From Pelomyxa schiedti (lineage: Eukaryota; Protista; Evosea): a DNA stretch of 48,066 nt. The position numbers and the translations under genes are program-made. The stretch covers positions 1 to 48,066 of the forward strand of contig JAHLWZ010000011.1 of NCBI GenBank assembly GCA_020536535.1, written 5' to 3'. A model generated the notes under the pieces. The model ran no database searches. It saw only the letters and a list, made by a program, of their open reading frames with translations, and was not told the origin of the DNA. Positions 2,687-39,771 of the stretch are shown here, in pieces. The first letter of the stretch is position 1. Each line of letters opens with the position of its first letter.

Positions 2687-5600
2687 TTACAATCCTTGGA
2701 GGGAACGCTCCAGGTCCTTCACTAATATGGTTCCTTCATCCGCCAAGGAGAGCATCTGTGTGTCCAGGTCCATGCCGTCGTTGCTCAGGGTGTCAGCCAG
2801 CTGTTTAATCCTGCCCATAATCCTGTTGGCTTCAGTCAAGTTATGTCCGCCGCCCAGCGCGGAATGGAAGTCGCGGTGCAGCTGCTCTGCCTCTTTGCAG
2901 TGCTGGCTCTCCACGGAGTCCATGGTGGCAACAACTTCGGAATATGACGCGTGGAACGAGGTGAATCTGGCGCAGAGCGATTGGAACTCGGGAAGAGCCT
3001 GCAGCTGCGGATTCACGATTGTGGCACGCAGTGTCAGGTTGATGTTGAGCAGTGCTTCGAAGTTGTTGTGGATGCTCTGAATGCTGGCCTGAATGCCATC
3101 GTATTCCTCTTTCTCGTGTTTCATGAAGTCTATAACTTGTGGGTCTTCAGCTGGTGGTGGGAGTGGAACCGGAACTGGAACAACTGGAACCGGAACCGGT
3201 ACTACTGGTGTTGGCACTGGAGGTTGTGGCAATGGCTCTGGCACTGCTGGTGCTGGATCCAGCACTGGTTGCAAGGTTGCTTCTGAATCAGGACCTATTT
3301 TGGTTGTTGGTATCGTTGGGTGCGTTGCTATGTATTGAGTTTTACACCCTATTCAGTAAAATACCTAGGGCATTCATAAACAGACAGGTGTAATGATCTG
3401 ATTTGGGTGGACTGTGCCGGGGGGATGGGGCAGTTTCTGGAACAAAAACTGATAACTGAAGGTTATCTAGTTCATGGTACTGATGGGAGATAAGTATGGT
3501 GATTGCTATGTTAAACTACATACTTCATCATCTGCTTGGTCTTCATCGTTGGAATACTGTAAACAATATTTAAGAAGGTAGTGATATAGAAAAAAGGAGA
3601 GAGGGGAATTCAACATTGGCGATGGCAATGAGTAAATCGCCACAAAGAATGTGCAACTGCCTCATCAGGTAGCAATAGTTGGCAAGAGGCATGTTAAACA
3701 GCAGTGATTCTATATCTTCCTTGCTGATGTGGTCATTGACCTGTGTTAATTTAGCAGTGTTAGCAAGGGTAATTACAGGACTGCACAATTTCAGGGAACG
3801 CTATCAAGGAAGACAGCAAGGCAGTGTTGTTGCCCTTTATCCTGTCACGCTTTAGGTATGTGCAGATGGCATCAGCAACTGCGTGCATATGCCGCTTTTT
3901 GTCAATTGGGGCTTCCATTACCTTTTTTTTTTTTTCCCTTAGTCATTCTCTCATTCCCCTTGATGGAAACCTCTTTCAGCTTTTCTGTTACTGTGGATTG
4001 CAATTTTTCTGATGGAGTCATGTCATACTCACTGGGCATCCCTATAAAAAGCCACTGTTTAGCTTTGTACTTAGTAAGAACCGTCATGGAGATATCGCCA
4101 ATTGTAGCAAATTTCTGATTGCGCAGCAAAGTGAGAGCTCTTGGAATTGGTTTATTTGGGATAAGGTCTAGCCAAATTTGTGCAAGAGTGTGTTGTTCAT
4201 GGTGGGTGGTTGGTCGGTGGTGCAAGTCTCTTTGAAAGTTTTCCAGTAGTTGGGTAAGCAGCTGCATCAATTCTCGTATCTGCTCCTCACTCTCACCTGA
4301 TTTCAAGGTTCAAGTGATAATTCATGGAATTTTCTCTTTACCTTGAAGAGCTCTTTCAAGGGTAGTGTAAATAGAAGGAGAGAGCTGTGTCTTAAAAGTA
4401 GGTGCCAACCTGGCCAAGTTTAAATTCGATGGTACAAGTCAAACATTAGGAAACAAACAGGTTAATTTCCCTATGCATTCTGTATTCCATTTTATCTTGC
4501 CCTTTCCATTTAGGTGCCTACATATGTTTATATTTACTACAAAGGATCAGTAGTAACCAGAATGGGAACGGTATTGTCAGGAAGGTCCATTGGGAAGGCA
4601 ACTCGCATGCTGTCAACTTCATTGAGTGTACATTTGTCAGCCAGGTAGTGGCTAATTATCTGATCGGCAATGTATGGAAGAAGGAAAAAAAGAACGGGAA
4701 TACAAATCGGGTAAGGGCGTTTTCTTCAAAATTGATGTTACTTTTGGTTCCATCTTGTAGTTTCAAATGGGCAACCGTTATTCTACCCAGATCAAAGCAG
4801 TTTACAGAAATAAGCAATTCTTATGATATTATTACACTGTATCCCAGAGAGTGGACATACGAGAGGCAGCATTTGGGATCGCCTCCACATTGTAGTAGGT
4901 TGCTTTGTTGTTATTTTCAAAAGTGAAGCCATAGGGATTTAGAACATCTATAAAATGTGATTGATATTCATGATAGGTGACCAGATACCACTATCACAAG
5001 CTTTCCGAAGTTCAACAAGAGTATTTTGAATTCTGGACATTTCTTTTATAACTGAGAAAATAAGGTCACCATGACCTCTCTGGGGCAAGCTAACTAACTC
5101 AGCCAATGATGTAGACGGAGCAATTTCCGGTATTTTAATTCTATGGCACTTATTTAGAAGGAAAACGTAGTGGAAAAAGAGACATACGCTATTTGATAGA
5201 AGGCACTATGTACCTCTTTCCATGCATTCAAAAATTTCTTGTGATTGGAAAGGATGCAATCAGATGCACCAGGGTTATTTTGTATTACCCAGTTAATACA
5301 TTCACTGAAGGGGGCGTGAAGATATTCTCCTAGTGAATACAGTTAAAATTTTGATAGGTCTCTGGCAGGTACCGTTCAAGACTGGAGCAAACATCGAGTT
5401 GAGCATTTGATAGAATACCACAAACAGGGGCAAATGCCCCAAAACCTGTAGGACTGGAATATTTGTATAAAAATATCCCAAAAGAGTTGTTGGAAGAAAT
5501 TTCCTTCTAGCAATATCACAAAGCTCATCACATCCAAAAAGGCAACTAAGAAGAGTATCTTTATGTGAACGATAATCTTGGAGAATGTTGAACGCCGCTG

Positions 5601-8600
5601 TTCCCTTTGTGTTAGGATGAATTTTGGAATCAATAAAGAAAGGTTTCTCTACTTGTGGTATTTTCCTAATAAAATACGTGAGATTGGAGAAGAAAATATA
5701 AGTGGTTACAAATCGGCAATCCCCAATAGTGATAGTGATTTACTGTCTTGCAGTAGTGCCACCAGAGTTTTCTCTTCCCTAATTGACTTCAAGAAAAAGG
5801 TGCGACTGTTCTGTAGAAAAGAGGTTGGGTGCAATAACTGGATAAGAAGTAAGAGAACGGAAATCTTATAGAAAAGGAAACCTGCTCCACAACATGTAGC
5901 AGCTCAGGCTTCACTTTTTGAATCTGCATAAACAAGTTTTCGGTTCCACTTAGCACACCAGCAACAAGTTTGAGAAGAATGGTTGAACAGGCTGCCTTCT
6001 TGATTTGCGATAGAATATCCCCTATTTGCCATTTCAGTAAAAATGCCAACATTAACTGGAGTGCCTTGAGTGAGGCTAGTTAGGAGCTGCCAGGCTTCAT
6101 CCATAGTCTTGATAGGAATAATTGCCTTTTGCTTTGAATTGTAATTGGATACAGGATCCATTGTGTGGAGGAAAAAGTGGTAAATCCAGAACTCAGTAGG
6201 CAACAAACTTGGTGGAGGAGAACGTGACATAACATTAGGAGAAAATGCATATGTGTTGTCACTCACTGCCGGTTTAGTTTCAGTAATTACCTACTAAGTA
6301 TGAAATAAAGAGAAGGTGATTAGCAACTGACTTGTGCTGCTAATTGTAACAGCTCCTCGGTGCATTTCTCTGGTTTAGATTCCACCCACATAAAAAGGAA
6401 GTTGCTCATCCAGTTATTCTCAGACAGTTTAGCACAGTAATCTTTCAATTTTGGGTTTCCATTAAAGTCTGGGAGAGTTTTGTTGTTCATCTATTCTTTA
6501 TATTAGTGTGACAGATGAATTTAATGAGTCTGACATGAAGAAATGTTATCAAATTCTCTTTCATTTCATTTCTCAAGGACTGGGTTTCATTGCTTTGAGT
6601 CATAAAATAGTCAATTACATCTCGCAGGAAGTGGATACTGCTTTCTGATGCTTGGCTTACAGGCACAGGAAGAAAATGAAGAGCCAGCAATACACCATTT
6701 AAAAGGATTGAAGTAGCTTTATATGTAGTGGAAACAAATTCCTCAAGGCATTGGAGTAAGTGCTTATTCTGTGTGAATGCAAAGGATTCTGTGGCTGAAG
6801 AACATTGACAGAGAAAACTGAAAACAACATGCATTGCATCCAGCCTTTGCAATGTGTCAATGTGGGTTGATAGAAATCGGGAAAGATCCTTTCGAGGCAG
6901 TAAGGTTGAAAAGAAGGAACGGCACACTTGACCCCAGTTAACAATACTCTCTATGTTGCTACAATCTCTCCCAAAAAGCCCAACTGTAAGCCTTTTCCAT
7001 AAAAATTCCGTACTCAAGTCAGCGATCCAGTTCTGAACATCAATCAATTTATTGAGTTTAGGCATATCCATATATCTGTGAAACTCCTGGTTTGTGAGAG
7101 GAGGATTCAACAGTTGCAGTGGGGTCACAAGTTCTTTGAAATACCAAATTTCCTTCTCAAAAAACCATTTTATGACGAACAGAAGTGGTACATCCATGAA
7201 TAAAGACATTTTGCAGACCTCAAGAGATTTTATAATAAGATCTACAAAGCGCCGCCATCTATTTTGAACTTCTTCAGTTGATCCAAGTGTTCCAACACGA
7301 CAGGAGAATTCTGAGAAGTGAAGAGATGACATTTTCATCGTTCTTGTTACGAAATCTTCTTGAAATGCTGTAAACAAATATTGTGTGCCTAAGTGTTCCA
7401 CAAGTGTTTGGATGGCAGGGTTTCCTTCTATAAGTTCAAGCATTCTCCCATGAAGATCAAGTTGTGAAAACGGCTTATGACATAAATCTCGAACTGCCTT
7501 CAACATTTGCATATTGATAAGATTGGAAATGACGTCATAGAAGGGGAGCTTTGAAGGAAAGTTATATGTCTTGGAAATAACTAGTGACAGACTATGGGTA
7601 TTAGAGGTGAGGTCCTCCTTGCTGAGCTGAGGGATTGGAATGGCACAATATGTTCTATGAACCAGCTCCTGGAGTTTTGCAGTCTCAGGGTCACTAAACA
7701 TGTTCATGATAGGGTTTAACCCAAAAGAAGACAGCATCATCTGTAGAATGGAACCCACTAAAGGAGCCATGAAATGGGACAGAGAAGATAAAATAGCACC
7801 AACCAAGCTGACAACAGAAGAGCCTTTAGAAATTTCTGTACCAGCCTCTGCAACAACGGAGTTAAGGAAACCTAGGCCCCAAGACCTGCTAAATTGGTGT
7901 ATGATGCCTATACACATTTCTGGGTGTTGCTCAAATAGGGTTTTGAGGATCTCATATCTTCGTTTCCATTGTGGATGCTGCAGGGCCACAGCAGTACTTT
8001 GGTCTCCATAGAAAGATTTAGCTTCAACGGAATCAAGGACAGAGGGACAGGAGTTAAGTCCACTGCCAGACATAAATCGGCAGAAGTGCTGAAGCAGCTC
8101 AAAGAACGACTTACTAAACATACCAGTTTCTTGATCACTATTGCTTAACTTACAATTCTCACCATCATTCAGTGTTAGCTGAAATGCATTGGCCATTAGC
8201 CACTGGGGGTCTGGTGCCATGGAGACAGTGCGGCTTAAAGGGGAAACTGCAATTCCCAGTGTGTCGATGTATATAAAATCCCAATTGTTGAGGAAAACTG
8301 CGTCGTAGGGACTCTCTCTTCTGATCCCAGCCTCAGGGGGGAAATGGACTAGGACCACAGCAAGTTGAATACCCGTGTTGGTGTCTGTATCTCTTTTTGC
8401 AGAATTCCAGGCTTCATCAATCTCATTTCTCAGGAAATTGATTTGCTGAGGGGAAATGATAGCCAAATCAGCAAGGCACAACAGCAACCTCTTCCTGTTT
8501 GAAGAACGGAATTCCTTCACTTTTAGGGTGCACTGCTGGCTGGAGAGTACCTCACGCATATTTATAATTTCCAGATACTCATCAGCTTTTGCAGCTGGGT

Positions 8601-11600
8601 CTACAGGGTTAATGTCTGTGAGGATTTCAGATATTTTGTCTTGTAAGTGCTTGTCAGTGGGTAATTGGAGTAGTTCAGCACTGGTGCGAGTGAATACTCC
8701 CCACTTAGAACAAAGTGCTCTTCCAGAACTTCTTTCACAAATCAGCTGCTTTAGAAACCTGAAGACTGAAAAGTGTTCCTGCTGTAAGAAGTAACAACGT
8801 TTGTATCTCTTTGGCAACTTGGGACAGAAGACAATCTGCTCGGGTCTTGCCAACTGAAGAATGTGAAGGTTAACTTTGGTTATGTATTGCTGCATGTTCC
8901 GTTCCCAGTGGTTATCTTCAAACTTAGGACTGGTAAGGGAATCAGAGTCTCCAAAGAGCGGCGGGAAAGCAGGGATAAGTTCATCAATATTCTCTTCTGT
9001 TGAGTTCCCCTGGTGTGTACTCAGTTTCACTGTCTGCTGCAGCACTGAAAAAATAAAAGAACTTGCAGTTTCATTGGCTGCCACGCCATAAAATAACCGG
9101 GAGTTACAGCTATCAGTATGTAATTTCTGGATCATGTGTTCCGCACCTCTCTGAAGAACTGCATATGGAGGTAAAGGGTGTGAATGACCTGAGGAAATGA
9201 AGGTCCTTAGAGGGAATGCCAAAAGTCGTTCAAACAAAGCGTCGTCAATCCCGAGACAATATTTTTCAAATCTATTCAGCAGCGGTGTTGGAAGGCTCTG
9301 CAAAGATGACTTGGGTACGTGAACAATTACTCTGAAGTTGTCATGCACCACACAAGGTTGAGAGAATGTTCCAGCAGCAAGGTTGGCAAAGCAAACCCGT
9401 GAGCTTGTGTTTGGAGCCTTGGAAACATCACGTTTATTCTTAGGCATGATTGTGTAGTGGCGGTTGAAAACATCATAAAACGAACTGTGAACACTAGTGG
9501 AGTTGACAAGTACAATTGTAGTACCAAGTTCCATTGCTATTTTCACTTTCTCCACTACTTCAGCTTTTACTCTTTGGTCATTGTCACCTGGAAAATCCCC
9601 AACGTAGCATATAGTTGTTTGGTTACGATCACATAGGCCTAGATCAAAAAGTAGAGCTACGGCGACTTCGTTTTCCGTTGGGTCAAGCTAAGACACAATT
9701 GAGAAAACTCTTTAAACGGTGGGTGCATACAAGCATTATGTAACGAAATGGAGCTGTATTAGGATCCTCCAAATCTGTCAACTTCTCAGAAAGACTCTCT
9801 TTGATTGTATTTATCTCTGTTCTACGTCCAGCAGGCAACTGACCCCACAATAACGTATTATTCGATTTAAGTGCGTGATTGATATGGTCAATGAAATTTG
9901 CAACAAGGCAATCAAAGTGACGCTGGTCCAAACCTCCAAAATTTCTTTTCAATCCAGCAATAACCTTGTGCTCTGTAAGGTCAAAAGAGAGTCCATCTGC
10001 TGTGAAACAGTGCTTGCGGAGATACCGCAAGAAGTAGACGAAGTCACGAAGGTGAAAGAATCTTTGTGGGTATGGAGAGCCATAGAATTTCACTACTTCT
10101 TCCTGGTATGCCACACACAGTTGGGCAAGTACATTCTGTACAGTGGAGTCTGGCTTATCTCCAAATATGCAACCTTGTTTTAGAAAAAATCAGTTGACAG
10201 CCCCGTTTTATTTCGAAAAAAAGAAGCTAAACCTTCAGCTAGTCTCTGCAAGTCAGTAAGAGGAGGTTCGCTTTGCAGCAGCATCAATGTCCTATTGGTC
10301 TTGGCTTCATCCAGAATTCGATTAGATAACAAAACTGATGAAACTTTTGGGTGATCAAGCTTGAAGTGTAGAATCTACAGTACAGATGTAATAAAGGAAC
10401 ATTATCAAACAAGCACAGTACCTTCAGTGGCGATAGTTCCTCTGAAGGTAAACCGACTTCATCCAAAAGAACAGCACAAAGTTCTCTGGAAGTTGAAAGA
10501 AAGGACTTCTGCCGGTGAGTTGCAGATTTGTACATGGACTGTATTTCAGAATCAGTGGATTGTTCACTGCATTGGTATCGAAATGGTTGTATATGATGCA
10601 AAGATCTGTAAAAATCAGAAGGTGAAGTTGTTCCTTTCATGTTATCAACTGCCACAGTGAAACTTAGTGTTTTTGAACAACCCCTACTGGGAGATCAAAA
10701 ACAAAAAAGGAAAAAATGAGTGTTCATCATACGGGGGCCCAACAATGACAAGAGGAATTCTAGAATCCAGACATACAACTGTGCAGAATAGATTCTCCAT
10801 GAAAGTATTTGTTTTAGCAATCCCGGCAGGAAGAACTGTGTTTTTACACAACTTTTCTAAGACAGCATGTGTATAATCAGACCATCTTGCTAAGTAGAGG
10901 GGAGCATTTGTGAAGTGTGCATTAGTGAAGTCTATAAGTGCCTTCTCAAATTGTTCCCTTGTCCAAGGTGTGTTTTCACGTGATGTTTCATGAAGCGGCT
11001 GTGACTTCGGCAGATTACCTAAGGCCTGTGTGTGTTGCTGAACAAAAGTGGTAGATGGAAGCCGGAAGTAGTATGTCATTGTTATGGAGAGAGCCTTTGT
11101 GAAATTTAGGTAGATCATTTAAGAGACGGAACTACCAGTGCCTGCCAATGGCATTCTTTTTCATGCAAGGAAAGAAAGTTTGGAGTTTCGGGAGCAGGTA
11201 GATTGGTCATAAACTGTGGGTGACTGCTGAAATAGCAATAAAGATCAACAGCACGTACAATATCACGTATAGTTGCTGTTACCCTGTGAATTCTTGCATT
11301 TTTAATGAAATCTTGCCCCATTAAAATGAGGGGTGTAAGCTGTTGGGTGACGAAATTTTTTCCAGGAAAACGGTTGGATATCAAGCCTTCTGTGAAGCTT
11401 TCTTCTTGTAGCCTTGTTAACTTTCCAAAATCCACAATTATCTTTTCCATTGAGAGTGGAGGAGCTCGGACAGCAAAAGATTTTCCTGAGAGTTTAGACT
11501 CTCTTCCAATGAAATTGAACTGGGTGTGAGCTTTGGTAGGCTCTACAGTGTCCATGTTCTTGTTTAGAGCAGCAACGAAGAAGATATCCTGGGGAAGATC

Positions 11601-14600
11601 TAATCCATCCAGCTTGGAATCACACATGACTTCCTTTACCATCCCAAGCACACTGGTAGATGTGCACTCATCTATGAAGCAGACAATCTTGGTGGCACTA
11701 GGAAAATGTGCAAGGACATCTTTGATATGTTGTATTCTGGCCCGAAACTGCTCCGCAGTGAAACGTTGATGCATCCTTATTCTGTGAAAGACAGACTCAA
11801 ATTTGGCGTTTTGAAAGGCAATAAGTAAATCAGCCAATTCCTTACTGCTATTCACTATGTAGTGCACTCCAGGTTCTAAGACTTCAGGCTTTGGAGAAGG
11901 TATCAGATACAACAAAGAGATCATGTCACATACTTGTGTGAGGGAATTTGAAAACATCTGTCTCAAACAGTCTGCTCGCAGAATATGTTGTCTCTTTTTG
12001 AGATTTTTTATTACATATTGCACACATTTACACGCAAAAAGAGGGAAGAATTTGTTGAAAGTGTTACACATTTCAACAATGAGGGAATGGAACTGCTCCG
12101 AGCTATCTAACCACTCCAAGGCTGTCTCCGCTGTGGATTTTGGGGATCGTGGAATGGAAAGCGGAGTCCTTGGGATAGCTGAAAGCTTTTTACCCTGAAA
12201 AATTGCCGTACATTGCTCAATAAGGACAGATGGGATACCAGGTATATTTTTCAGCATCCTATCCAGTACAAATCGCTTCGTTTTCCAGAACAGATTGGGG
12301 AACAGTTTAGAGTGTGCGTTAGTGAGAGTACTAAATACAGTCAGCAACTCCGTCTTTCCTGTCCCAGTTCCACCACACAGAATTAAGTTTTGCCCTGCCT
12401 TCATGTGATCATAGATAAGCAAGAGCTTTAAGGCAAAATCGGGAGTCAAGACATAGTGGTGCTGCCGTAAGATTCTATCCAAACCCTCAATCCCAAATGA
12501 CAGTTGTAGTTGCTGTCTCAGCCTGGCAGGCATGGATTTAGCTTCCTCAAGTGTGAAGACAAGGTCACGGGGAAGTGCCTCCTTCCCAGATGTTAACATG
12601 GGAAGTGATTTTGCTGCCACAATGGCAGTTGGAAGAGTAATTCCTTGGAAATTGAGTCTATGGGTGTGTTCTCTGGCAATATAGATCTGATCTGAAACAT
12701 CCAGAGTAAGTGTGCAAAGCCGAAGGCTGTCCGACTCAAAGAGGAATAACAACTGGTGTACAGACAACAATTTAGAGACATCATGTTCCTGTTGGTACAA
12801 CAGCTGCTGCTTAGCATACTGCAACAACCATGAGCATCTATCAGCAAGAAGTGAAACAAAGTGATGCTGCTTCATCCGATCATTGGACAGTTCAGGGGTG
12901 TTGGTACTCTGGAAGTATGACTGCAAAAATGTCCCAACATCAAATGAAGGAGACTCACCAAGGAACTTTACGAGTTTGGTAGTGTCATCAATCAGCGAGT
13001 GGCTTTTTGCATAGAGGAACTTTGAAACGAGAATGGCTTTATCGTCGATAACATAGCTGAGAGTACATTTTGGAATTAGCTTGTTCAGGTATTGAAGGAC
13101 AGGGAGATGTTGCAATACAACATCAGTGGTTTCAAAGCCAAATCCATCCTCTACATCAGCTTTTGGGGAGGCAGAAAGCTCCACAAAAATATTCCACTTG
13201 ACCTTATCTTGCCAAACAAGTAGTACAGTACCAGTTTGGTTGTCGCATAAAAAGCCCCATAGGATGAAGTCATAGAAAAACTTTCCAATTATAGCAAAGT
13301 TTGCATAGGCACTGATGTCGAAGTGCATATTAATTACACATTCACCTAGTTTCTTAACATCGTTTTGAAGTCTAGTAAAAGTGGGCACCATAGAAGACAC
13401 AGTGAAGCATTCGGTCATACTTATGCTAACAGAAAGTGTAATCATTTTACTGGTTTGTTGTTTCATTTTCACAAAAATATCAGTGCTTTTGCCACTGCAT
13501 GCCGGCCCAGTGTAACATGATACATCCATATTTCTTCTGCTGAGGATAGCTTGTGGGTTAAGTGGCGAGGATGTGAGGCGGCTCTGGGCTTGTGCCATAA
13601 CATCTTCTTGATTCTTAACAGAAAAGTTTAGGAAATTGTCAATTCCAACACGTGATGTGAATATGAGAAAAGTCTTTGCATGTGGTGTCTCTTGTGTTGC
13701 CATCTTGGCAGACCATTTAAAAAGCTTATGTCTGATGGATTCAGACATATCATTCACACCAACGATTACAAAGTAGAGGTGGGGAAAGCTCTTTATACAA
13801 GTGAGAAAATGCTTCAACTCTGTGCCCGTTGCCTGCAATCCATAACATATGAGGGAAGGATGTGGTACTTGATAATTAAATATCTCAAACAGCAAGTAAA
13901 GCTGTGTTGTGGGAGAGAAGTTCTCAGCAAGCTGTACTGTAATTTCGTGGTTGTCACTGCCAGGGTTGCCGGACATAGCTGAAGATTGGTGCGAAACGGC
14001 CACAACACTGTGTAGCTGCGTAACTAGACTGACAAAGGAACAAGCTAGCCTCAGAAGCAAAATGGGTTCCCACATTGCTGGTTTACCCCCAAGTCCGGAA
14101 ATTGACTTTGACATGCATTCAAGTAATGACTCATGAGGGATAGGATTGCTGCACATAACGTCAGGGAAGCAGAGCCACAAATAAGGCCTATATGCAGATG
14201 TAGTAACTGGAGACATCTCGAGAGAAGATGCAAGTGTTTCTCCAAATTTCGCAAGTTGGTGGCCTGACAGAAAGTTGAGACGGGGTTGGTTCTTGTAAAT
14301 CAGATTTAGTTCAAATCTCCACTCAGAAAGAATTCGAGTTAGCTGAATAGTAGTGAGAGGAGAAATTTCAATAACGAGCTTACTTCTGTATGAGCCTGCT
14401 TGAAATTATCGATATTTTGAAGACCACCAGGTTCATTGAGGAAGGTCTCGATTCCCTGAAATTGAGGATGCCCAAGACCTTCAAGTTGAAGACGGACTTC
14501 ATGCATTTCCTGGTTTCATAGGGATATATTCATTTTGGAAAGCTGTAGAGGAAAGCAAGTACCTCTGCCAATGAAAACAGTAGAATAAAACCTGACACAT

Positions 14601-17600: not shown

Positions 17601-19341
17601 TGTCCAGAAAGGAGCCAAATTGCTCAGGTTTGAGTGAAGAGACATTTTCACTGAGAAAGCGTTGTAAAAGGGGAAGATCCAGGAAGTAATCAGGTAATCT
17701 AGTAGAGATAAGAGGAAACAGGTAAGTTGTGCAACAACAGTTTCAACTCTTCCATTGAGAGTGAATGCTTGCTGACATAACACTGGATTGAATTGGTGTA
17801 AAAATCTTTGATATCAGGAGGGATCTCTGATCCCAGCACATCCACCCCAGTCTGCAAGGATAACTGTTTTTCCCTTAGCTTGTTTCTCTCGGGTTAGATT
17901 AAAAGGTTTACCTTGGAAAAATTTGCAGTCAATATATCTTGTGTGCTTTGAAGTTGAGCGAAAAGTGGAAAACAGTGTGGAATTTGTTTACCCCAGTTTA
18001 AGGTGCAATGCTTCTGAAACCCACTTTATCCAGTTCCACCATATGGCTAATCGCTTCAAATTGACTTTATCTTTCCTTGTAGTTGTCAATTCAAGAAGAT
18101 CATTATAGCAGTTAGTCATGTCCTGACTTGACTAAATAAAAGTGTAAAAAGAAAATGCCTACCTGTATTCCATTTCTGTTTCCAATAGGAATTGAGAATC
18201 CTCCAGGGCACACCCAAAACACATTAGATATCACTTCTCCTTGGAGTTGTTCACATTCATGGGCACTGCAGTGGTGGAGCTCATTTTTTATTTGCCGTAG
18301 GACACCTTGTAACACACTGATACTCACACTAGCAGGCAGCTTGCCTGAGAGTGAGTTATAAAGTACAGGTGCTCTGCAATAGTGATAATGAATAAATAGA
18401 ATAAACAATATATGAAACCTGTTAAAAAAGGTAGGAGTAAAACTGAACGGCAACTGTGTAAGGAAGTGGTCACAGAAGGTATTCCAGTTTGGAACAAACT
18501 AACATAAGATTAGGTTAGTTACGAGAAACTATCAACCTCATTCTCATTTGTTCCTTTGACATAATGCAATGCTAGATACAAAATTTGAATATGCATTTCA
18601 AATCCAGAACTCTATAGATGGTTACAATATTGTCTAATCCCATGATGGATAAAAACCAGCAACAGTGTTTTAGACCGCAGAATCGGGTCAACACTGCGAT
18701 GGGTAATCAACTGTAGCAGTTTCTCAAACATAGCTTTGTTATGTTGAAATAGGTTTGCCAGTGTCTTTATTTTTATTATTCAGTTAAAGAAAAGTATATA
18801 CTTCAGGTACCTGAAGAATAGAGATATCTCTTGTTTCAACTTCATCTGATGGACATTTTCCAGAAATGTGATAAAGTACACGATCAAGGCAACGAGGAAC
18901 ATCCTGTAAAATGGCCAAATTGTGTGCAGGATTCTTCTCAAAGGGTATTTCCCTAAGCAACAAGGATTCAGAGAAAGGGAAAAGCAAGAGGCTTGCCTCT
19001 TACTCTGTCAACTTTAGCAGCATTGCCAGTAAGAACGGAAAATTATCTAGAACGTGACTGCCCGTCACAGAAGGGACGTCAGAAAGGTTTAACTCCAGAG
19101 ATCGTGACAAAGAAACCAAGGCCCCACACAACCAAGATATGTGGGCTGAGAAATTAGGATTGTGGGCGAGGGCGTTGAATTGATCAAATGTCGAGAGGAG
19201 GGAGAATGCCGTGCGCGTGTAATTGCTGTCTAGAGTTGTGGACCATCTCCCATGCGCTCTTGATACAAGCTCGGGGCAGGAGACAAGGTGTGTGTACCTA
19301 TGGTAACGCAGTGTCAATCTCCGCGGGTCCGGGCAAGCCAT
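2687..19341 (-). CDS. RNF213: Giant multi-exon RNF213/mysterin-like AAA+ ATPase, paralog B (roughly 4,500-5,000 aa; no RING/RZ seen; Pro-rich linker plus helical C-terminal extension)
   Basis: RNF213-order motifs: LNFLSGHQL, P-loop GPACSGKS + HFDIS, YVLTPDFALKLL, Walker A GGTGTGKT, Walker B CFIDE, KEVMCD..LDG, FFVAALN, VRAPPLSM..IVDFGKL, IRDIVR, ENLFCTVVCLDSRIPLVIVGPP|GCSKT, LLDEVGL, SNRILDEAKTNR, FFHLRDF, RNFGG, KVKIAMELG..FYDVFNRHY, VHDNFRVIV, PLLNRFEK. Start MACPDPRR at 19341, stop TAA at 2687. Exon-by-exon homology with the plus-strand paralog from first to last exon supports a single gene. Confidence 0.85.
9230..14342 (-). other. Dynein-like multi-AAA core of paralog B
   Basis: AAA2-type P-loop ~13484-13507; AAA3 Walker A ~12351-12375 and Walker B ~11670; AAA4 Walker A split by an intron (~10668-10740) and Walker B LLDE ~10460; AAA5/6-type motifs 9250-9600. 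Confidence 0.85.
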
Positions 19342-20783: not shown

Positions 20784-21048
20784 GGATCTTCAACACAGGA
20801 GACTGATTGAATGATGTGATTCGATTTGGTGAAAGAATAAACACAAAGCAAAAGAATAAACACACAGTCCTTGTTCTTTCCTTTCTATTCAAAATCAAAG
20901 CTTGTGCCCCCCACAAAGTGACGCGTTTGTCTTCTGTTACGTGAAATAATTCGCACGTTGGCCCCAACTTGGTTGTTCGGTGTTACCAACAGACAGCCAA
21001 CAGTTTCGAAAAACTGAAAAACAAACAAACAAAGATCAGACCCGTACT

Positions 21049-30000: not shown

Positions 30001-33000
30001 TACTGCACTACAGACTTGATCATCCAAAGGTTTCTTCAGTATTGCTTTCCAACAAGATTCTCGATGAAGCAAAAACAAATCGTACCCTCATGCTTCTCCA
30101 AAGTGAACCACCAACACACGACCTTGAGGTTCTTGCACAAGGCAAGCAGTCTATTTAAAGACAAGATACCTAGGAAATCTAACATTGCAGTAAAGGTTGC
30201 ATATATGGGAATAATATAGAGACAGTTCCAGCAAGCACCAAAGAACTCCTTTCCGCTTTATGTGCAGCATACCGAGAAGAAGTTGCGAAGCTCTATGGGT
30301 CACCATATCCAAGCCGCTTCTTTCATCTACGTGACTTTGTGTACTTCTTGCGTTACCTTGGCAAGCATTGTGCAAGTGACATTTCTGGGACAGGAATGTT
30401 TAGTCTCACAAAATCTCATGTTTTCCATGGCCTGAGGCGAAACTTTGGGGGATTAGAAGGACCCCAATTCATTTCACTTGTGGGCAATTTCTTCTCGAAG
30501 ATAACGAGCGTACTGAAGAGATATGGCCAAGAACCGTGGGAACTTAGTCAATCTGAAATCCCTCACACTGAAGTTGACATGATCAAAGAGAGCCTGGGTG
30601 AAAAACTGAATGATGACGAAGATCCCAATACTGCCCCTTTTAGATATATCATGCTTGTACATTCCTTTTTCCTCTTTTTTTCCCCTAAGCTACCTGCAAC
30701 ATTTCCTAGCTCGATCCAACGGAGAACGGGGAGGCAATAGATCTACTTTTTGACCTTGGACTCTGTCCCCGAGCAACAACCTCAGTGTGCTATGTTGGTG
30801 ACTTCAGGGGGGATAACGACCAACGAGTACGTGCAAGTGTAGTTGAGAAAGTCAAAACAGCCATGGTGAAAGGTTCAGGCAGCTCTATTTTTGGTGATTT
30901 TTATACGTTTACAGGTGAGACGATCCTTCTTGTGAATTCTGCCAGTATACACAGTTCGTTTTATGATGTGTTCAATCGGCATTACACTGTCATTCCAACC
31001 ACAACTAACAATGTCACATCAAATCTCTGTTACGCCAATCTTGCTGCTGGTTCTTTTTCTCATCCATGTCTTGTACACAACAACTTCCGGGTTATTGTCC
31101 ATATTCCCAAGTCTTCTTTGCAGAAAATTCCAACCCCCTTTCTCAATCGCTTTGAAAAGTACACTTTGAGTATTGAGGATGCCCTCTACGAGTATTTAAG
31201 CAAAGTGCCAATCGTGATCAATGAGGAGAAACAAAATCCTTTCAACTCTTTGAAAGATTCACTTATTGAGACTGTGCACCAACTTCATGTTGTTTCGTCC
31301 AACTCTCATCTATTGTACGGAGTAGAACCCAAGGAAACTGTTTGCTCCCTTATGTTGAATACCGTAGAACGTACTTTCCCGATGTGTCTGAATATGATTG
31401 GAACTCAACAAGACTTACCACCTCTGGAAAATAACTATGCTTCCTATATACCACAATTTCCACCACTCCTTGGATGTTTCCCTGCAAAAGATACAGAGGC
31501 CAAAGCCTCACAATTTGCAGCAGCAGAGCACTGGTGGCAGAATAAACAGAAGTACATTGCAATGGCCAACACACACATACTGCAGTTGGCTCGACCAGAA
31601 AGCATCCATTTCCTTAAAAAAAAAATTCCATCCTATTACCTCGAAGCCTACCTCCTTTGGCAAGAGCATTTCTCCTTGTGCAGATTCATCAGTACCCTAG
31701 TTTCCAAACACTGGGAAAAACCACATGAAGCTGCTGACTTGCCTGCGATACAACAAGTCCGCTGTATTCAAAAGTGGGGGATTTTTATGAGAACAAGTGC
31801 CGAGCTCTTGAAGCTCCCGAATGACCACCAGATACAGGAAGCAACCCTTTCAAGTCTCCGAGAGCATGGCATCATAGAGAGCGGGCACAGAATGGAGGAG
31901 TACGTGCAAGTCTTATCTCTCACTGAGATGGCCTCAAGCCAAGACTGTGCTGATCAAGTGAGATCTTTTTGCTGCAAGCCTCTGGGTTGCCTGCTTATTT
32001 GTGTTGCGGATCTTGCCGTTGTTACACCCAACCAGGTCAATTTCCTCCGCAATGAGATTAATGAACAGTGGAAAGAATATGAACCCCAGGTGGTTGTTGA
32101 AGGCGTGCGCCCTTCAAAACCTCAAAAACAAAGAATTGCCATCGTGGTGCTACATTTCCCTCCTGAGATTGGCTTGAGAAAGGAGTGCTGTTATCAGGCG
32201 ATTTTTCTGAAGGCCTGGGACTTCACATACATTGACTCACTTGGTGTGTCTTCAGCCACCGGCGCTGCTTCCCCCATTATTGAAGCAGATCCAAAAACGT
32301 GGATGGCAAAAGCATTCCGACTTGAGGCAAAACTGGGTAAGGACCTACATCAAACCCAGATATCCGAAATGAACATGTTCAAAGACTTTTTCTTCGATCT
32401 CCTCCGCCAATTTTGCACTCTCATGCATGGAAATGGGTTGGTTGGTGGCAGTGGATTCGAAAATCAGGATGCTCAGGCATTTTATGACAAGGACAATTCC
32501 AAAAAGACACCCGACGATGTAGCTGAGATGAGATGTAATATAATCACGTCTCTGTTCGAAGAAAAACCCTTTCTCTATCGGGACATAATCCAGAGGTTTG
32601 CACAGTCATGGACTCCACAGTTCTTGCATGCCCTCGTTCAACAAGCAAGCACCACGTTGTATCGTGGTGTTAGCATAACGAGCTTTGTCAGTATTTTGTC
32701 GTCATCATTGCACACATTCATGACACCCCTTTTATCTTCAACTCTGAGGATGATACTCTCCTCCTACAATTTGCATTCGGTTCTTCTAATGGACAGCAAA
32801 GATAGTGAACTGATAGAACTTGTGCACAGAATTTTCACGACTGTGCCGATACCAAAGATGACACCAGAGGTGATAACAAACGCAAGACGTGTAATCCCAA
32901 TGGTGGACATTTGTCGCATGCACGCTTTTCCGCCGCGCCTTGCATTCTATGATATAGTAGCAACACTGGTAACAAATAAAATTGGACATGCCTGCAGGTC

Positions 33001-36000
33001 ACTACGTGATCAACACCGAAATGCACAAATTGTCTTCCAAAAGGTGTCAGAATCTATAGCCGAGGATGGAAATCTCAACTCCATTCTTGAACACATCGAG
33101 AACCATCCTCGTCTGTTTGAGTGGTTCAAGTATGACTTTATCACTCGCAGTCTGAAAATAACCTCTCTCCATTCATCCCGTTTCGAAGTTTTTTGCGACA
33201 GCAATTACTCAAAGCAAGAGATAAGAGAGAAATTAGAGCAATTTGAGAAGCTTATGCTTAATATTGTTCAGTCTTACAAAGTGACGCTGCAGGAAAACAT
33301 TGTCAATCTATTCATAGTCAGACGTTTTCATGCAGATGAAATCAATTACTTCAGCCAACTTGTTTTACCCCTGCAGTTAATGCACCCTTCACTGTCTGTG
33401 AAAGATTGGCAAGTTTTCAAAGTACCATCCTTCAAAACTGTGTTGGAGATGGAAAAATGGGTTACAAAGCAGTCTGCACAGTTGCTTTTCAAAAGGCTCC
33501 GTGGCATTCTGGAACTCCAAGCTCCAGAAGATAATAATAATAAAAAAGAGATGATTAGTAATTGGGGAAAATGCTATCGATGGTTCTATTCATCTCTCAA
33601 GCCCCGCAGTGAGCTCAGCAGCCTCTTATCCACAGAAATCGAGACACTTATGCAAATTGATGCAATGCATGTACTCTTTCTTGTATTGCTCAACAGTGAC
33701 AATGTCTTTGATTTATCATGTCCGTTCCTTCAAAATCCCACCACCTCTGGGTTGCTGCAAGCCTTTTCTGGGAAGAAAAATACTCCAGCTGAAAGGTTAA
33801 GGGAAGGCCTGAAACTTGCTTCACAGCTTTTACCCGACCCTCCACTGCCTCACCACACACAAATCCCTCACAGCCTAGAAAGTATTGCGGAGTATCTTCT
33901 ACAGGAAACTCCGAAGAACTCTCATGTTATGAGTAATGACTGCAGTGACAACATTTCCATATTTCTTGAGGTACCTTCCAAGCTCTCCTCACCATTTTAC
34001 TAATGAGGAATGGAGATCTGCAGTGACACGCTCCCAGACTTCGATACAGATAAGAAGCTGAAATATTACTGTAATGCCCTTACCGCCAACGTTGGTTGGG
34101 TTTCTAATTTCCTTGTGACATGGATAAAAACAAAACCTCAACAATGGAGGGAGCCCTTTTTTGCCTTGCTCGCTTCTGTATGATATGATAACAGATTTTA
34201 AAATACCTGCCCTTTGACCAAACAAACAAATATAGGTGATTGCCCAACGACCAAACTTCAATAGAGACACCTATACAACCAAACCGGACCTTCTGTCACC
34301 TGCACGCATTTCCCCCACGTTCTCCCCTCTTGATTTCTATCTGTTCCACTTCCTCACTTGCCTGATGGATGTAACCGTGCGCCGTGGCTCAGATCCACAG
34401 AACGAAGCTAAAACTGCCTCTCAGTCCTCCTTAAAGGAGGTTGTGGACTATTACTTGCAACTCCAGTCCATTAACGTCTGGGAGACAGGTTGACATCCCA
34501 AATCCACCCCCTTGCCCTGCTCAAAATGAAAATCAGACGTAGAGTTTATTCTCCACCACCACAAGAAAACTGTATGTCAGGCTCTCATTCTCAAAAAAGC
34601 GGCGGGGCTATTGGATACCTCAAACAAACGAGTAACTTTACTTGACCAAGTAACAGGCCTTGGAGAACCTACCCTTGGCATCATTTCCCAGGTTAGTTCC
34701 AATTTGCATTTTCCGGACTCTAAAAATCAAACGAAGGTTCTAGGCTCAAATTCTCTCACTGACGGTAAAGCCTATTTCATTGGTGCACTTCCAAATGATT
34801 TCACTGCTCTGGAGCTGATACGATTGCCCAAAGAAACCTTACAGCAATTGAATATTGTTGAAATGTATCTTACTCCATGAAAGTGTGGTTGGTAACTCAC
34901 GTGTTGAATAAAGGAGCACCACTGAAGATGTTACGCTCCTGGATACCGCTCGATTCTCTTTCACCCTTGCAGACATACCAGCAGATTTTGCACAAAAAAG
35001 GAGTAGCATCACACGAGACAAGTCACCACAAATTGAATCTTCATTTGTTGAACTACAAAGAACCTACCTCAAAGTTTCTACAGGCTTTCAAGCCAACTCA
35101 CTTGAAGAAGTCATACAACAAGAAATGTCCCAGGATAATGCCAAGCAAAGTAGCAACTTTCTGTGTCCACACAGTTCTAATGCCCTTACACAGGCCACTT
35201 GAAGTTGTGTCTTATTTTGGGCATCTACTATGAATGTGTACTGGCAAATCGACAGTGCGACTCATTGGACTCTCGCATCAAGATCTGGAGGAATCTTCTC
35301 TCTCTGTCAGCTCTGGAAGTCGACGGAATACAATTTATAGCGGGTTTGAACAACTTCATCAAGAACGAAACCGCGGTCTCTGTATACTTTTCTGATCCCA
35401 GAACAGCCAGTAAAATTCTGTTGTTTTGGCAATATTAATTTCACCTTTTCAAAAGTCTTACTTGTCAGTGTATTGGCCATTGTTACGAGTTTCCCGGCAG
35501 ACCACCTCCTGTATAAACAGATATATAATACCAATTCGTTGAAGGGTCTTTTCAATGGTTTTCCTTCAACGGCATTGTGCAAGGACGTTCCAAGGTAAAT
35601 AACTCGTTGTGGAATCATGACGTTTGACAGAAACAAGGTATAAATTGATCCTAGATATTATTACCTGGGGTACTCTTTGTTGGGCTCTCATTCTCGACCC
35701 CACTTCCCACCAACACATTCAGAAGTGGTTTTTCTCTGGGGAAAATGAAACTCCTTCAACGGGTTCTGCCATACCTCAGACGCTTCAGGCCTCAGCTTTA
35801 CACAATTTTACTGACGCTGTAAGTGCTCTAGAGAACGATACAGACACAAGACAAATGGTGCCACTGAATGACTCCCTTGTCATCTCATTGTTTTTTTTTT
35901 AGAACCTTGATGCCTCTCATTATTTCACAGAATCACTACTGTTCCTCTGGCAGGTTACAGCCCACTCTACATCTTGTTCGTTGCAAATTTCTTTTTAGTT

Positions 36001-39000
36001 CTTTTGCTGCTTACACAGACGTGTCGGGTTTACAGATAGAGAAAGAGTTGTTGAATATGAATCTACTCTCAAGGCACTTGTTTTTGGCAGCATCGACAGG
36101 CAGTACCAGTATTTAAAAGCTCTCTACATGAGGAACCTTTATGTATGAATGAACGCCGAAATAATCTGCTCTAACAATAATTTTAGTCCAAACCCAAATA
36201 CAAGGCATTGTGTGACATGCGAGACACTTGTACAGGCACTATCTGCTCCTGTGTATTCACATGGGAAGATGTCCAGGGGTTACTGAGATTATCTGGATCT
36301 TGTTCACAAGGATTTCTGGCTGAATTTATTGCACTTAGACACTGCCTTCGAGCGATTTTGAAGCTACCAAGACTGGTTCACCTTTATAAACTACTCAATG
36401 AAGCATTTGGTCCGCATGTTGAAGGTTCAAACATTGTTGTCTTCAGACTTGTAATCCTTTTTTTTTTTTTTTTTTTTTGTAGCAGCTAATCTTCACCAAT
36501 CTGTTGCTGAATGCATTACGCTACTTGCCAAAGTTGACCCAGCCACAGCAGATACGTTTAAAACCTTATTTGAGAGCCTTATCCCGGTTTGGGAAGAAAT
36601 TCGTATCTTAGTGAATGGGTTGAAGACCCATTTCTATCCAAACACAAAACAAATGTACACAAGAGTGGTAATAAGATTTTAGCATGACTTGAGAATAGGT
36701 TACCAACAGCCACTTTTCCACCTTTGAGCCTTGAGTCTCCTTTCGTTACCCTCATCAGTTTGAGAACAAACGATGAGACCAATGGGCAGGGTGATCTTCT
36801 CTTTAAAATGGTTGGAATTCTTGTGGACGTTCAAAACTATCTCCTCCAACTGAGACAAGAATATGATACTGGTGTGTGGTGCTCGCCAATTGTTGTCCTT
36901 TCAGCTAATCGGGTAAAGATGCATTGAACCCACATAGCTTTGTTTTTGAGAAGTCAATCCAGCACTACAATATAGAATATCTTCCGTTTTCTGTTGATAA
37001 GCCTGACACCAGTACCTGATTCCCACATTATCTAAACTCCTTTGTGAACAAACTCAAAAGATTTGAGTGTTCTGATCAATGTACCCTCATCTCAAGTGGT
37101 GGAACAGGATTTGATTAGATACATAACTCTGCCTCCTGAGGGCTCAAAACTTAACACCAAGATTGACGCTACTCAACTTGCCATTTATGTATGGCACCCG
37201 CATCTTGTGCACTTTGGGTGCTCAACGGTTTCCTACCAAAAAAAAAACAAAGGTAATTGGAAAGTACATGTCGGGGAAATGCCTTTTGGACAAAGATGAA
37301 TTGAGGTCGGTCTTTCCTATAGGAGCAATGACAAATCCCCAGCAATCAGCTGTAACGATACAACCTGTTTGAGTCACCATCCCTGTTGCGTGTGATAACC
37401 ATTTTGCTAGGGCAAACATGGAGACACTATCGAGTTAACATTTCAAGAAGAAATAGAAAAGTAATTCTCCTTCATACTTCATGTTATTTATTTCTTCTCT
37501 ACGAAGGTTGGGAACAAATTTCGAGGAAGAAATTCCCAAGTCTATTCCGCTTGACAGAGCTTTGAACAGTTGAAACTCTTCTGAAATATAAAATAAAATA
37601 ACAACACCTATTTTCCTTAGACGAGCCTGAAGATAAATTACGGGATTTGGTTGTGAAGTTGACACAGTTAATTCAGCGTCTACACCGAGACATTCAAATC
37701 CACCCTGAAGCTTCTGAAATCAGGCGATCGTTTTCAGAGTGTTGGACTTATTTGATGCCAACCCACCCTGTGCCACCCTACCTTTCTTCCCATAGTCTGA
37801 AAGTGTCGCACATCAAGTCTGTGGGGAGGTGCATACTTGCGAAATACAAAGGAAAGCAATGGCTATTCTCAGACTTACCTGAGGAGTATAAAATGAACCC
37901 AGTGGCGGACCAACGGACTGCATTGGAATCTTCCTTCTCCAAGGTAAAGTTCCCGGAGTGAAGACTTTCATTCAAAACAAAAAGGTTCTCTCCCTATCCC
38001 TTCCTGAGAGGCAAAGGCTAAGCAGTGTTGTTGAGAGGATGTGCTCCTTTTTGACAAAGGATCATCTGAAAAACGATTATAACAAATCTCTCTTGTCTCT
38101 CTTCGAAAATGTCAAAGAAATGGTACTCAATCTTATATCGCTATTCATCACTCATTGAACCTAAAAAAATAAGAATGAACAGTATCTGTCTGATGTTAGA
38201 GCTTTACTTCCAAAGGACTTAAAAATTTGTCACTATTGCTTCTTTATGAGGAATCTACACACCCTGTGTGGGGACTTATTGCTCTCTGTTACCACTGTAC
38301 GTCGTGATTTTCATTTACTCCTATAATTGCCAATACTGCAGGGAATGGAGGAGCAAGAAACTGAAGTCACACAACTCGAGGTAATCCTCTTGCCAACACG
38401 TCCCAACACTAAATAACTCAATTGCAGATGCCTGATGGAAAGTTCCCTGACAATTTAATGGTCTCCCTGCAAGATATTGGGACCGGTAACTGCTATTTAT
38501 TGCTTTATTTGTAGTAAAAGATTCGTGGCAGAGGCTCTATCGTCACCTGAAAATGACAGTGTCGAACAGCCTATGCCACCAGCCCCGATAGACACTACGG
38601 AGCCGCTACCTGAAGAAAGTGCTAAGCCACCCTCCATGGTTTGTGTACCAGCTGTAAAGGAGCCATTTCTGACAACTCATAGGACCCAGAGCCCTTTGAA
38701 GCAAGGATGACAGCTCTTCTACAGGACCTTGAAGAGGTTGTGTCAAAAAGCAAACAAGAGGAAGCCGACTTTCAGATTTATGTTACCAGCATGAAGGGCA
38801 ATTTTAACGCAATGAAGGAGATGCTGGAGACTGTGAAGCAACAACTTCCGAGTGAATCTCGTGGATTGCCTATTTTCAACAACGTGTCAGTCTTATTGTC
38901 CAAACAAGATGACGCATTGGAGGAAATGGGTCTTACTATAGACATGACAAAAGAAAATGAGGAAACTTGGAACCAACACAAACGACGGCTTGATGAGCTG

Positions 39001-39771
39001 CTCTATGAAGCTCATCAACTCTCAGAGATAGCCGCAAAAAAAGAGACTTCATCTGACGAAGTGAACGAGATTGCACAACGAAGTCAGCTGGCGTCTGGGG
39101 TTCTGGGTGAGATGAAAGCTCTTGCAGAGAATCAAAATTCAGCTGCAATGGAGATGGATACAAGCAGAAACACAGTGGAGGCATCATTGATGGAAATCCA
39201 AGAAGAGCTTGAGCGACTGAAACTACGGCAACAAGAAGAAGAGCGGAAGAAGCTGGAACAAGAAGAAGCACGGAAAAAGCTAGAACAAGAAGCAGCTCGA
39301 AAAAAGTTCGAGCAAGAAGAAGAACGGAGAAAGCTGGAAGAACAAAGGCTGGCACAAAATTTTCCCAACAGACATCAGCGCACAACCAGCACAACCACAC
39401 CAGCACTGCCACAGCAATGCAACTACATCCCTCCACAAAATTTCACAGCAACATCCAACTCTCACCGGCGCACTACCAGCTCCACCAACATAACGCAACT
39501 ACCACAGAAACCTATGTACAGCAACACCACAAGCACCACCATCTTCACTGCAAACACACCACCACCACCATACAATGGACAGCAACCCTATATCACCTCA
39601 CCTTCCCAACCACAATATCAAAGGCCAGCTCCCCCTTGTACAGTACCCCAGCCCACAACCAATCCAGCACAAATGACACAACAATGGCCTCCACAGCAAC
39701 CCTACAGACAGTACCAACCACCAAACCCCACACAATTTCATCCCTCACCTTATCCCCCAGGCCGGCACTAG
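21049..39771 (+). CDS. RNF213: Giant multi-exon RNF213/mysterin-like AAA+ ATPase, paralog A (roughly 5,000-5,500 aa; no RING/RZ seen; coiled coil plus Pro/Gln tail)
   Basis: Start MSGWPRF at 21049. Motifs: GKERSGKT + HFDIS, YVLTPDFALKLL, GGTGTGKS, FFIDE, KEVLCDHRLDG, FFVAALN, VRPPPLSL..LVDFGKL, SIRDIMR, ENLFCTVVCLDAKIPLIIVGPP|GCSKT, LLDEVGL, SNKILDEAKTNR, RNFGG, RYIML, FYDVFNRHY, VHNNFRVIV, PFLNRFEK. CTD-like FLAEFIALRHCLRAILKLPRLVHL, GQGDLLFKMVGILVDVQN, KYMSGK. Stop TAG at 39771. Confidence 0.87.
26100..31200 (+). other. Dynein-like multi-AAA core of paralog A
   Basis: P-loop 26876-26899; Walker A 28049-28072; Walker B ~28640; intron-split Walker A 29579-29663; LLDE ~29910; AAA5/6-type motifs 30790-31170. 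Confidence 0.85.
39235..39345 (+). repeat. Coding 27-bp tandem repeat x4 (EEERKKLEQ-like; single alpha-helix/coiled-coil type)
   Basis: EEERKKLEQ EEARKKLEQ EAARKKFEQ EEERRKLEE in the last exon of paralog A. Confidence 0.8.

Follow-up and report, generated by a model that had tools for sequence, protein, structure and literature searches.

RNF213 is known mainly as an antimicrobial ligase of animals and as a factor in Moyamoya disease. Another described system with which large paralogous genes at one locus can be compared is the head-to-head pair of nucleotide-binding leucine-rich repeat (NLR) genes in plants, in which a sensor and a helper, two paralogous large nucleoside triphosphatase (NTPase) genes, are placed divergently at one locus. 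We have analyzed a DNA sequence of 48,066 bp from Pelomyxa schiedti, an anaerobic amoeba belonging to Archamoebae; this sequence, referred to below as the window, is the entire contig C11 (JAHLWZ010000011.1) of a 52.4-Mb assembly composed of 5337 contigs. Two giant genes, designated A and B, are located divergently in the window with a smaller CCHC-type gene between them, and both products have been registered in GenBank under the name "AAA+ ATPase [Pelomyxa schiedti]". A and B are intact and separately evolving members of a Pelomyxa-specific expansion with at least 11 close copies, which is part of a family of giant AAA+ proteins related to RNF213 and distributed across eukaryotes. Both keep the dynein-like ATPase core and the helical scaffold of the RNF213 E3 module and, judged from their predicted proteins, are without the known RING and RZ fingers as well as two cysteine motifs that are suspected to be ubiquitin carriers. 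The overall explanation that we consider probable is that A and B are two intact RNF213-like members of the expansion, placed head to head as a relic of an inverted duplication, and that they would be scaffold or coat machines in which ubiquitin transfer has been lost or reduced. In the literature library that we searched, no paper on RNF213-like families in Amoebozoa, Dictyostelium or protists was found.

Database searches were done with single exons or with the public protein models. When the product of gene A was compared with all PDB sequences by phmmer, nine distinct sequences were found at E ≤ 0.01, and all of them are RNF213 (E 7e-48 to 2e-38); dynein and midasin are not among the matches at this threshold. 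The alignment spans AAA3 through AAA4 and beyond (residues 1739–2720 of A against approximately 2430–3220 of human RNF213), and the significant matches obtained with single exons are also to RNF213 only. By a motif scan, three Walker A and two Walker B motifs were found in each of A and B in the order known from RNF213. In gene A, the Walker A motifs are GPACSGKS, GGTGTGKT and GPPGCSKT, and Walker B motifs (FIDEC and LLDEV) are found after the last two only. In mouse RNF213, AAA1 has no Walker motif of either kind, AAA2 binds ATP without a Walker B motif, and the competent units are AAA3 and AAA4 (PMC7311170). The pattern read from the sequences of A and B is the same, with Walker A only in the predicted AAA2 and with both motifs in the predicted AAA3 and AAA4. 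Dynein or midasin as the best kin of A and B was considered and is not supported, because the PDB sequence matches of A and the fold matches of the C-terminal module of B are to RNF213 only. The original prediction, made from the letters of the window, had preferred RNF213 to dynein and midasin, and it agrees with the PDB search, the Walker pattern and the C-terminal fold alike.

The RNF213 kinship of the C-terminal module is visible by fold only, because sequence profiles find nothing in PDB: profiles made from seven Archamoebae sequences, from a segment of 350 residues and from 40 family-wide sequences gave chance matches only. The AlphaFold2 model of the module of B (residues 3780–4974), built with a 62-sequence family alignment, has a mean predicted local distance difference test (pLDDT) value of 83 and a predicted template modeling score of 0.69. 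In a Foldseek search with this model, the top nine matches are all RNF213 (E 7e-13 to 4e-8, approximately 1100–1200 aligned columns), after which the values drop to E 1e-2 with generic alpha-solenoids. VIA-align gave Z 19.2 over 671 residues with a root-mean-square deviation of 8.1 to residues 4134–4979 of human RNF213 (9jwg_A), and the next match has Z 6.2. With this structure-based comparison, the fold of the B module corresponds to that of the RNF213 E3 module. The model of the C-terminus of A is of low confidence (pLDDT 61, seven sequences), and its five best Foldseek matches, with E 5e-4 to 8e-3, all belong to RNF213.

No RING or RZ finger was found in A or B by Pfam at E ≤ 0.1, which gave sub-threshold AAA matches only, and PF20173 (RZ) was found neither in A nor in residues 2600–5283 of B. 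As a positive control, the same Pfam scan finds ZnF_RZ-type (PF20173) at E 3e-18 in one family member. The product of gene A has no stretch of 60 residues with five or more cysteines, and the C3HC4 RING pattern is absent from all 152 relatives scanned. A locally iterated profile of the C-terminal module, with approximately 1100 positions, covers 117 of the 226 collected proteins, 94 of them over most of its length. B matches positions 13–1113 of this profile, and A and the paralogs on contigs C579 and C197 match positions 12–221 and 565–1088 only; a deletion of approximately 340 positions is common to these three, and the segment is likewise undetected in the copies on contig C347. Since Mastigella, Mastigamoeba and the wider family have this segment, as do B and the copies on contigs C526, C448 and C791, it was deleted in the A lineage and not gained by B. 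The intron map of gene A at the deletion site leaves no space for unannotated exons.

Two cysteine motifs are near-invariant in the module, a loop of the form PGS-x(7-10)-DCG in 55 and GxC in 56 of the 62 aligned sequences, and they sit at columns 838–840 and 1287 of this alignment. The only rows without both motifs are B, A, C579 and C197, all of Pelomyxa. B lost each motif by a short deletion, and in the A lineage the loop disappeared as part of the large deletion; the place of the lost PGS..DCG loop in B is at approximately position 35554, inside the segment that A does not have (Table 1). Crudely interpolated from the ranges aligned by VIA, the loop would come near residue 4528 of human RNF213, which is about the position of the RZ finger. 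The Pfam RZ model at E ≤ 10 found nothing on the PGS..DCG segments of eight relatives and on B.

The search with the AAA4 region returned 279 proteins, mostly unnamed, and the relatives are distributed over Archamoebae, Balamuthia, Physarum, dictyostelids, Naegleria, Willaertia, Chromera, a diatom, a chytrid, sponges and bdelloid rotifers; the nearest ones outside Pelomyxa are proteins of Mastigella and Mastigamoeba. In the P. schiedti genome, the close paralogs (at least 11) are A and B, one each on C791, C579, C526, C197 and C448, three on C347 and a fragment on C2255, and distant relatives were found on C1063, C957 and C492. The three copies on C347 are arranged head to tail on the forward strand (approximately 1–7.6, 33.7–41.6 and 49–57.1 kb) and have been recently duplicated, with tree branch lengths of 0.04–0.1. 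Contig C11 is the only one with two family copies on opposite strands, and the other copies are solitary or head to tail. Upstream of the C448 paralog, two matches at 127088–127732 and 128088–128732 (+) have identical scores and lie exactly 1000 bp apart, and this doublet could reflect an exon duplicated in tandem or an artifact of assembly. A family protein of 3853 residues, equal in length to the open frame on C957, is the product of a different gene.

Maximum-likelihood trees were constructed from the largest shared exon with a quick search setting. The eleven Pelomyxa copies form one clade with support of 100, sister to Mastigella, Mastigamoeba and environmental relatives. Within this clade, A is sister to the group of C197, C347 and C2255, with support of 98–99 in the Shimodaira–Hasegawa-like approximate likelihood ratio test (SH-aLRT), and not to B. 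When A and B were forced into one clade, the tree was 22.7 log-likelihood units worse, which is a borderline rejection in the approximately unbiased (AU) test (p = 0.0465). The deletion of approximately 340 residues independently groups A with C579, C197 and C347, apart from B.

The closest RNF213 homolog of the genome lies outside the window, because an RZ-bearing exon on C1063 (6265–9984 on the reverse strand, 1240 residues in an open frame of 1323 residues) gives E 1.6e-50 against RNF213, as compared with 5e-9 for the equivalent exon of A. The RZ-type zinc finger at 6325–6474 is in the same frame as the RNF213-like AAA segment and has 39.6 bits, above the Pfam cut-off. The C1063 gene is probably the amoeba's counterpart of RNF213 proper, and A and B, as far as their sequences indicate, are not the RNF213 ortholog and belong to a divergent, RZ-less branch. 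In the genome-wide search, RZ fingers were found on C807, C231 and C1063 and not on the window contig. Those at C807:56634–56771 (−) and C231:81305–81427 (+) have 72 bits each, and the genes bearing them could be ZNFX1-like or further RNF213-like ones.

For a view of a related locus, a Mastigella-like metagenomic contig (ERZ21831265:ctg79744l) has a single family gene at 2400–18400, which is not a strict ortholog; no divergent partner was found within 10 kb upstream of it, and its upstream neighbors are unrelated (Indigoidine_A, ART and Glyco_hydro_9 domains). An arrangement like A–CCHC–B was seen neither in this one inspected locus of a relative nor among the other Pelomyxa copies. The Mastigella-like gene is nearly intron-free over 7 kb, giving one tblastn segment of 2567 columns, whereas the Pelomyxa copies have more than 50 introns each.

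Comparison of the two halves of the window by tblastx gave a strictly colinear chain, which runs outward from approximately 18.4 kb and 21.9 kb to approximately 2.7 kb and 39.2 kb. The largest exons of A and B have 37–43% identity (E = 0 to 4e-74), BLASTP aligned residues 71–3838 of A with 136–3980 of B at 36% and residues 3875–4619 of A with 4333–5099 of B at 24% identity, and the first exons are visibly alike. The global alignment has 38% identity over 4383 columns; identity rises to 73% and 62% in the 250-residue bins around AAA4 and is lowest in the N-terminal 1000 residues (24–30%) and in the C-terminal quarter (21–31%). Both the homology from first exon to last and the strong divergence outside the AAA motifs, which had been claimed for the two genes, are borne out by these comparisons. 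The further claim that B has a reduced E3 region and A an extended tail has to be reversed, since it is A that is without approximately 340–350 residues of the module and B that carries a tail of 184 residues. A terminal three-helix bundle is common to A and B, for which VIA found generic helical-bundle or BAR-like matches only, with Z up to 12.7; this value is within the range expected of helical bundles, and the source model of A is of low confidence. Because the frames of both genes have remained open through 14–16 kb of coding sequence with an identity of 38%, we infer that A and B are under purifying selection.

By six-frame analysis of the window, two chains of open frames were found, one on the reverse strand from approximately 19.5 to 2.7 kb and the other on the forward strand from approximately 21 to 39.8 kb. 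The product of gene A is the registered protein KAH3767876.1 (100% identity to the queried exon). When the public models were mapped on the window, gene A has its ATG at 19455 and its stop codon at 2687–2689, gene B has its ATG at 21049 and its stop codon at 39769–39771, and neither has an internal stop. The start codons of these divergent genes on opposite strands are 1594 bp apart, close to the 1.7 kb first estimated, and the expectation that both copies are open when spliced holds for more than 50 exons in frame in each. A splice-aware gene predictor also runs a single open frame across the region of gene B; this predictor reproduced 96% of the public model of gene A in a validation, and its gene B model was used for local comparison only. 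Genes in the window are intron-rich, with a median intron length of approximately 45 nt and mostly GT..AG borders. In long open frames, the public models excise in-frame introns of 75, 45 and 42 nt (13344–13418 and 11889–11933 on the reverse strand and 30875–30916 on the forward strand, respectively), and these may be true introns or annotation choices. The coordinates of all features are listed in Table 1.

Table 1. Positions of the two giant genes, the gene between them and the features assigned to their products in the window.
Feature	Position	Strand	Residues	Basis
Gene A	2687..19455	−	4624 in total	Public model KAH3767876.1; 54 mapped coding blocks; introns mostly 40–50 nt
A, AAA3 Walker A GGTGTGKT	12351..12374	−	1769–1776	Motif scan; alignment to RNF213 AAA3
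A, AAA3 Walker B FIDEC	~11687	−	from 1983	Motif scan
A, AAA4 Walker A GPPGCSKT, intron-split	10668..10740	−	2285–2292	Motif scan; alignment to RNF213 AAA4
A, AAA4 Walker B LLDEV	~10472	−		Motif scan
A, site where ~340 module positions are missing	5556..5711	−	3838–3875	Profile and alignment
A, C-terminal three-helix bundle	2690..3142	−	~4474–4624	Model; aligns to B 4962–5099
CNBP/Gis2-like CCHC gene	19764..20783	+		Pfam zf-CCHC, 7 stretches, E 5e-41
Gene B	21049..39771	+	5283 in total	Public model; 62 mapped coding blocks and a 14-nt micro-exon
B, 5′ spliced-RNA stretch	22914..23867	+		RNA contigs; all joints match the public model
B, AAA3 Walker A GGTGTGKS	28049..28072	+	1904–1911	Motif scan
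B, AAA3 Walker B FIDEC	~28630	+		Motif scan
B, AAA4 Walker A GPPGCSKT, intron-split	29579..29664	+	2384–2391	Motif scan
B, AAA4 Walker B LLDEV	~29903	+		Motif scan
B, C-terminal module with RNF213 E3-core/CTD-like fold, no RING/RZ	34112..38841	+	3780–4974	AlphaFold2, Foldseek, VIA
C-terminal-module segment of ~350 residues kept in B, lost in A	34915..36240	+	3980–4333 of B	BLASTP; alignments
B-only tail, 184 residues, Pro/Gln/Thr-rich, low complexity	39217..39768	+		A–B alignments

Between the starts of A and B, the open reading frame at 19764–20780 on the forward strand encodes seven tandem zf-CCHC knuckles, and the presence of a CNBP-like gene between the giants, part of the original prediction, is in accordance with this Pfam result. 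The gene lies in the orientation of B and is a single copy in the genome. Its frame is open from 19764, and translation probably begins at an ATG in a small exon farther upstream; its product, with approximately 313–339 residues, is longer than a typical CNBP through low-complexity spacers. The distance from the start of A to the CCHC gene is at most 390 bp, and the start of B is 266 bp downstream of the CCHC stop codon. Because a complete CCHC gene separates the starts, A and B probably do not directly share a divergent promoter region; the promoter region between divergent genes would be that of A and the CCHC gene. At 20409–20768 (+), a contig from a run of another study (library type unknown) matches the CCHC gene but differs by four substitutions and by 6 nt inserted after 20490, which suggests allelic or strain variation in a low-complexity spacer. 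The window has a peak of guanine and cytosine content at 20000–22000 (57.5%, against approximately 41% in the gene bodies), which spans the CCHC gene and the first exon of B; both strands carry open frames in several phases there. Outside the genes, the flanks (1–2686 and 39772–48066) have open reading frames of 115–300 residues without Pfam matches at E ≤ 0.001, and each includes an assembly gap of 100 N (636–735 and 46670–46769). In total, Pfam found no families beyond weak AAA matches in the large exons of the giant genes and the open frames of the flanks.

RNA evidence was obtained from contigs of single-cell RNA-seq runs on 6 kb of the window (18000–23999), and such contigs cannot rank expression. 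Contigs from two runs lie on gene B at 22198–22333 and 22914–23867, with splice joints at 23059/23102, 23210/23253 (42 nt, GT..AG) and 23782/23831. Within 23364–23469, two RNA contigs contain the 14-nt micro-exon of gene B, corresponding to residues 596–600 of the public model, for which no place between canonical AG/GT flanks could be located in the window DNA. RNA contigs also include the 3′ end of the CCHC gene, at 20576–20881. Contigs of one further run, with unknown library type, are unspliced in the same 6 kb.

The head-to-head position of A and B is most likely a relic of an old local inverted duplication. This is the simplest origin, because two non-sister members of a dispersed family are unlikely to come to lie 1.6 kb apart by chance, and the A lineage would later have seeded further copies on other contigs. 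The old inverted duplication that had been proposed at the outset thus stands as the simplest origin of the layout, but A is now sister to copies on other contigs and not to B. As for function, the most likely role of A and B would be that of scaffolds or coat-forming machines driven by ATP, with their own capacity for ubiquitin transfer lost or reduced. Such a role without ligase chemistry is conceivable by analogy, since in human cells ATP hydrolysis is needed for the RNF213 coat on all pathogens tested and the RZ finger for bacteria only (PMC11549300). A and B may take part in surveillance of membranes, ingested prey or prokaryotic endosymbionts, and may perhaps modulate the three paralogs that keep the cysteines. 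An immune or symbiont-handling role is plausible on the same analogy, and on the biology of the host, since P. schiedti is described as living in a consortium with prokaryotic endosymbionts (PMC10579272).

Several points weigh against this explanation. The adjacency of A and B is supported only by assemblies of one single-cell-genomics sample, none of them independent. RNA support is limited to approximately 1 kb of B and, for the CCHC gene, to its 3′ end, and on the first exons of gene A (18000–19455) there is no RNA contig, although absence cannot be concluded from contigs. The AU test gave a borderline value only, and the position of B in the tree, with C579, is not resolved. Two non-sister copies 1.6 kb apart could also have been kept together by selection. 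Furthermore, the loss of known motifs in A and B need not prove a loss of ligase activity, because mouse RNF213 without its RING stays active as an E3, and its scaffold resembled no known E3 (PMC7311170).

The last point leads to the alternative that A and B have remained active as ligases for ubiquitin or a ubiquitin-like protein, acting independently of each other through an unrecognized site on the RNF213-type scaffold. The E3-core/CTD scaffold has been kept with high structural similarity, the RING-independent activity of the mouse protein would fit, and frames that are open over such a great length speak for a maintained function of the protein in its entirety. We nevertheless regard this alternative as unlikely: the RZ finger, which is required for lipopolysaccharide ubiquitylation and for coat formation on bacteria (PMC11549300), is not found in either protein, both near-invariant cysteine motifs have been deleted in A and B, and A is in addition without approximately 340 module positions.

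Quite unlikely, in our opinion, is the reading put forward in the original prediction, namely that A and B are a co-regulated sensor and helper pair in cell-autonomous immunity against ingested or endosymbiotic microbes. The divergent orientation with starts 1594 bp apart would suit such a pair, and so would the short C-terminal module of A and the long one of B, which mark two subfamilies and fit a division of labor; both genes have been kept open at 38% identity, the host is described as carrying prokaryotic endosymbionts (PMC10579272), and the N-terminal arms are the fastest-evolving part (24–30% identity), the N-terminus of RNF213 being positively selected in primates (PMC11549300). However, a complete CCHC gene intervenes, so that A would share its divergent promoter region with that gene, and the pairing is unrepeated in the other copies (at least nine), which are solitary or head to tail, including the three in a row on C347. 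The nearest relatives of A are on other contigs without a B-like partner, and the one relative's locus inspected has no divergent partner within 10 kb upstream. The conserved cysteines, moreover, are missing from both members and not from one alone. A and B are two of at least 11 copies in the genome and not a private pair, and A is sister to those on C197 and C347. We infer that the two genes do not form a conserved module; apart from their adjacency, no observation indicates that they are functionally coupled, and the idea of a paired immune locus, having only this adjacency behind it, adds little.

It is very unlikely that the RZ-less branch uses the PGS..DCG loop as a catalytic center, that 8 of the 11 close Pelomyxa copies including A and B are catalytically dead and serve as sensors or decoys or regulate the three copies with the cysteines, and that the A–B locus keeps one of each dead subtype. 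Hardly credible is an artifact or a decaying remnant, whether sequences were joined chimerically in the assembly of amplified single-cell DNA or one of the copies is an unexpressed pseudogene: contigs of one sample only span the join and gene A has no RNA contig in 18000–19455, but A and B are only 38% identical, hence no duplicated-read artifact, one 28-kb contig of the probable source sample covers 18000–23999, including the join of A, CCHC gene and B, with a single mismatch, more than 50 exons are in frame and stop-free in both genes, and B is spliced in RNA contigs.

With A and B as intact RNF213-like proteins that have probably retained scaffold function with little or no ubiquitin transfer, the significance of the locus is in the architecture. 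The combination of a dynein-like core and the unique E3 scaffold of RNF213 is present in an anaerobic amoeba, and in Pelomyxa genes of this type have expanded to a dozen or more, most copies including A and B being intact yet without known or suspected elements of ubiquitin transfer. The genes themselves have already been in GenBank as "AAA+ ATPase", and what is new is that, in a lineage-specific expansion, proteins with the RNF213 architecture have neither RING nor RZ nor the cysteines of their branch. This raises a testable question about the role of the RNF213 scaffold without ligase chemistry, for which the cysteine-bearing paralogs and the RZ-bearing homolog in the same genome are natural controls.

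Among the known systems, the head-to-head NLR pairs of plants differ from A and B in that a third gene lies between the latter, the pairing is not conserved or repeated among paralogs, and an integrated decoy domain was not found. A concatenated AAA+ ring is common to A and B and to dynein heavy chain and midasin/Rea1, and Pfam AAA_7 and AAA_5 give weak matches below the curated cut-offs; unlike RNF213, dynein and midasin are absent from the PDB matches at E ≤ 0.01 and from the fold matches of the C-terminal module. Closer to A and B are the RZ-less giants of Amoebozoa, Heterolobosea, rotifers, sponges and alveolates, which are mostly annotated as "hypothetical protein" or "AAA+ ATPase", have the same AAA4 region at 31–50% identity, and share with B a C-terminal module of approximately 1100 residues; nearly all of them keep both the PGS..DCG and GxC motifs that A and B do not have. 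From animal RNF213 (mysterin; PDB 6TAX, 7OIK, 8S24 and 9JW1), A and B differ in having neither RING nor RZ, in a C-terminal module undetectable by sequence profiles, in the appended three-helix bundle and, for B, in the Pro/Gln-rich tail. Like animal RNF213, A and B are giant single chains with a dynein-like core of six AAA units, and B has in common with it the C-terminal E3-core/CTD fold.

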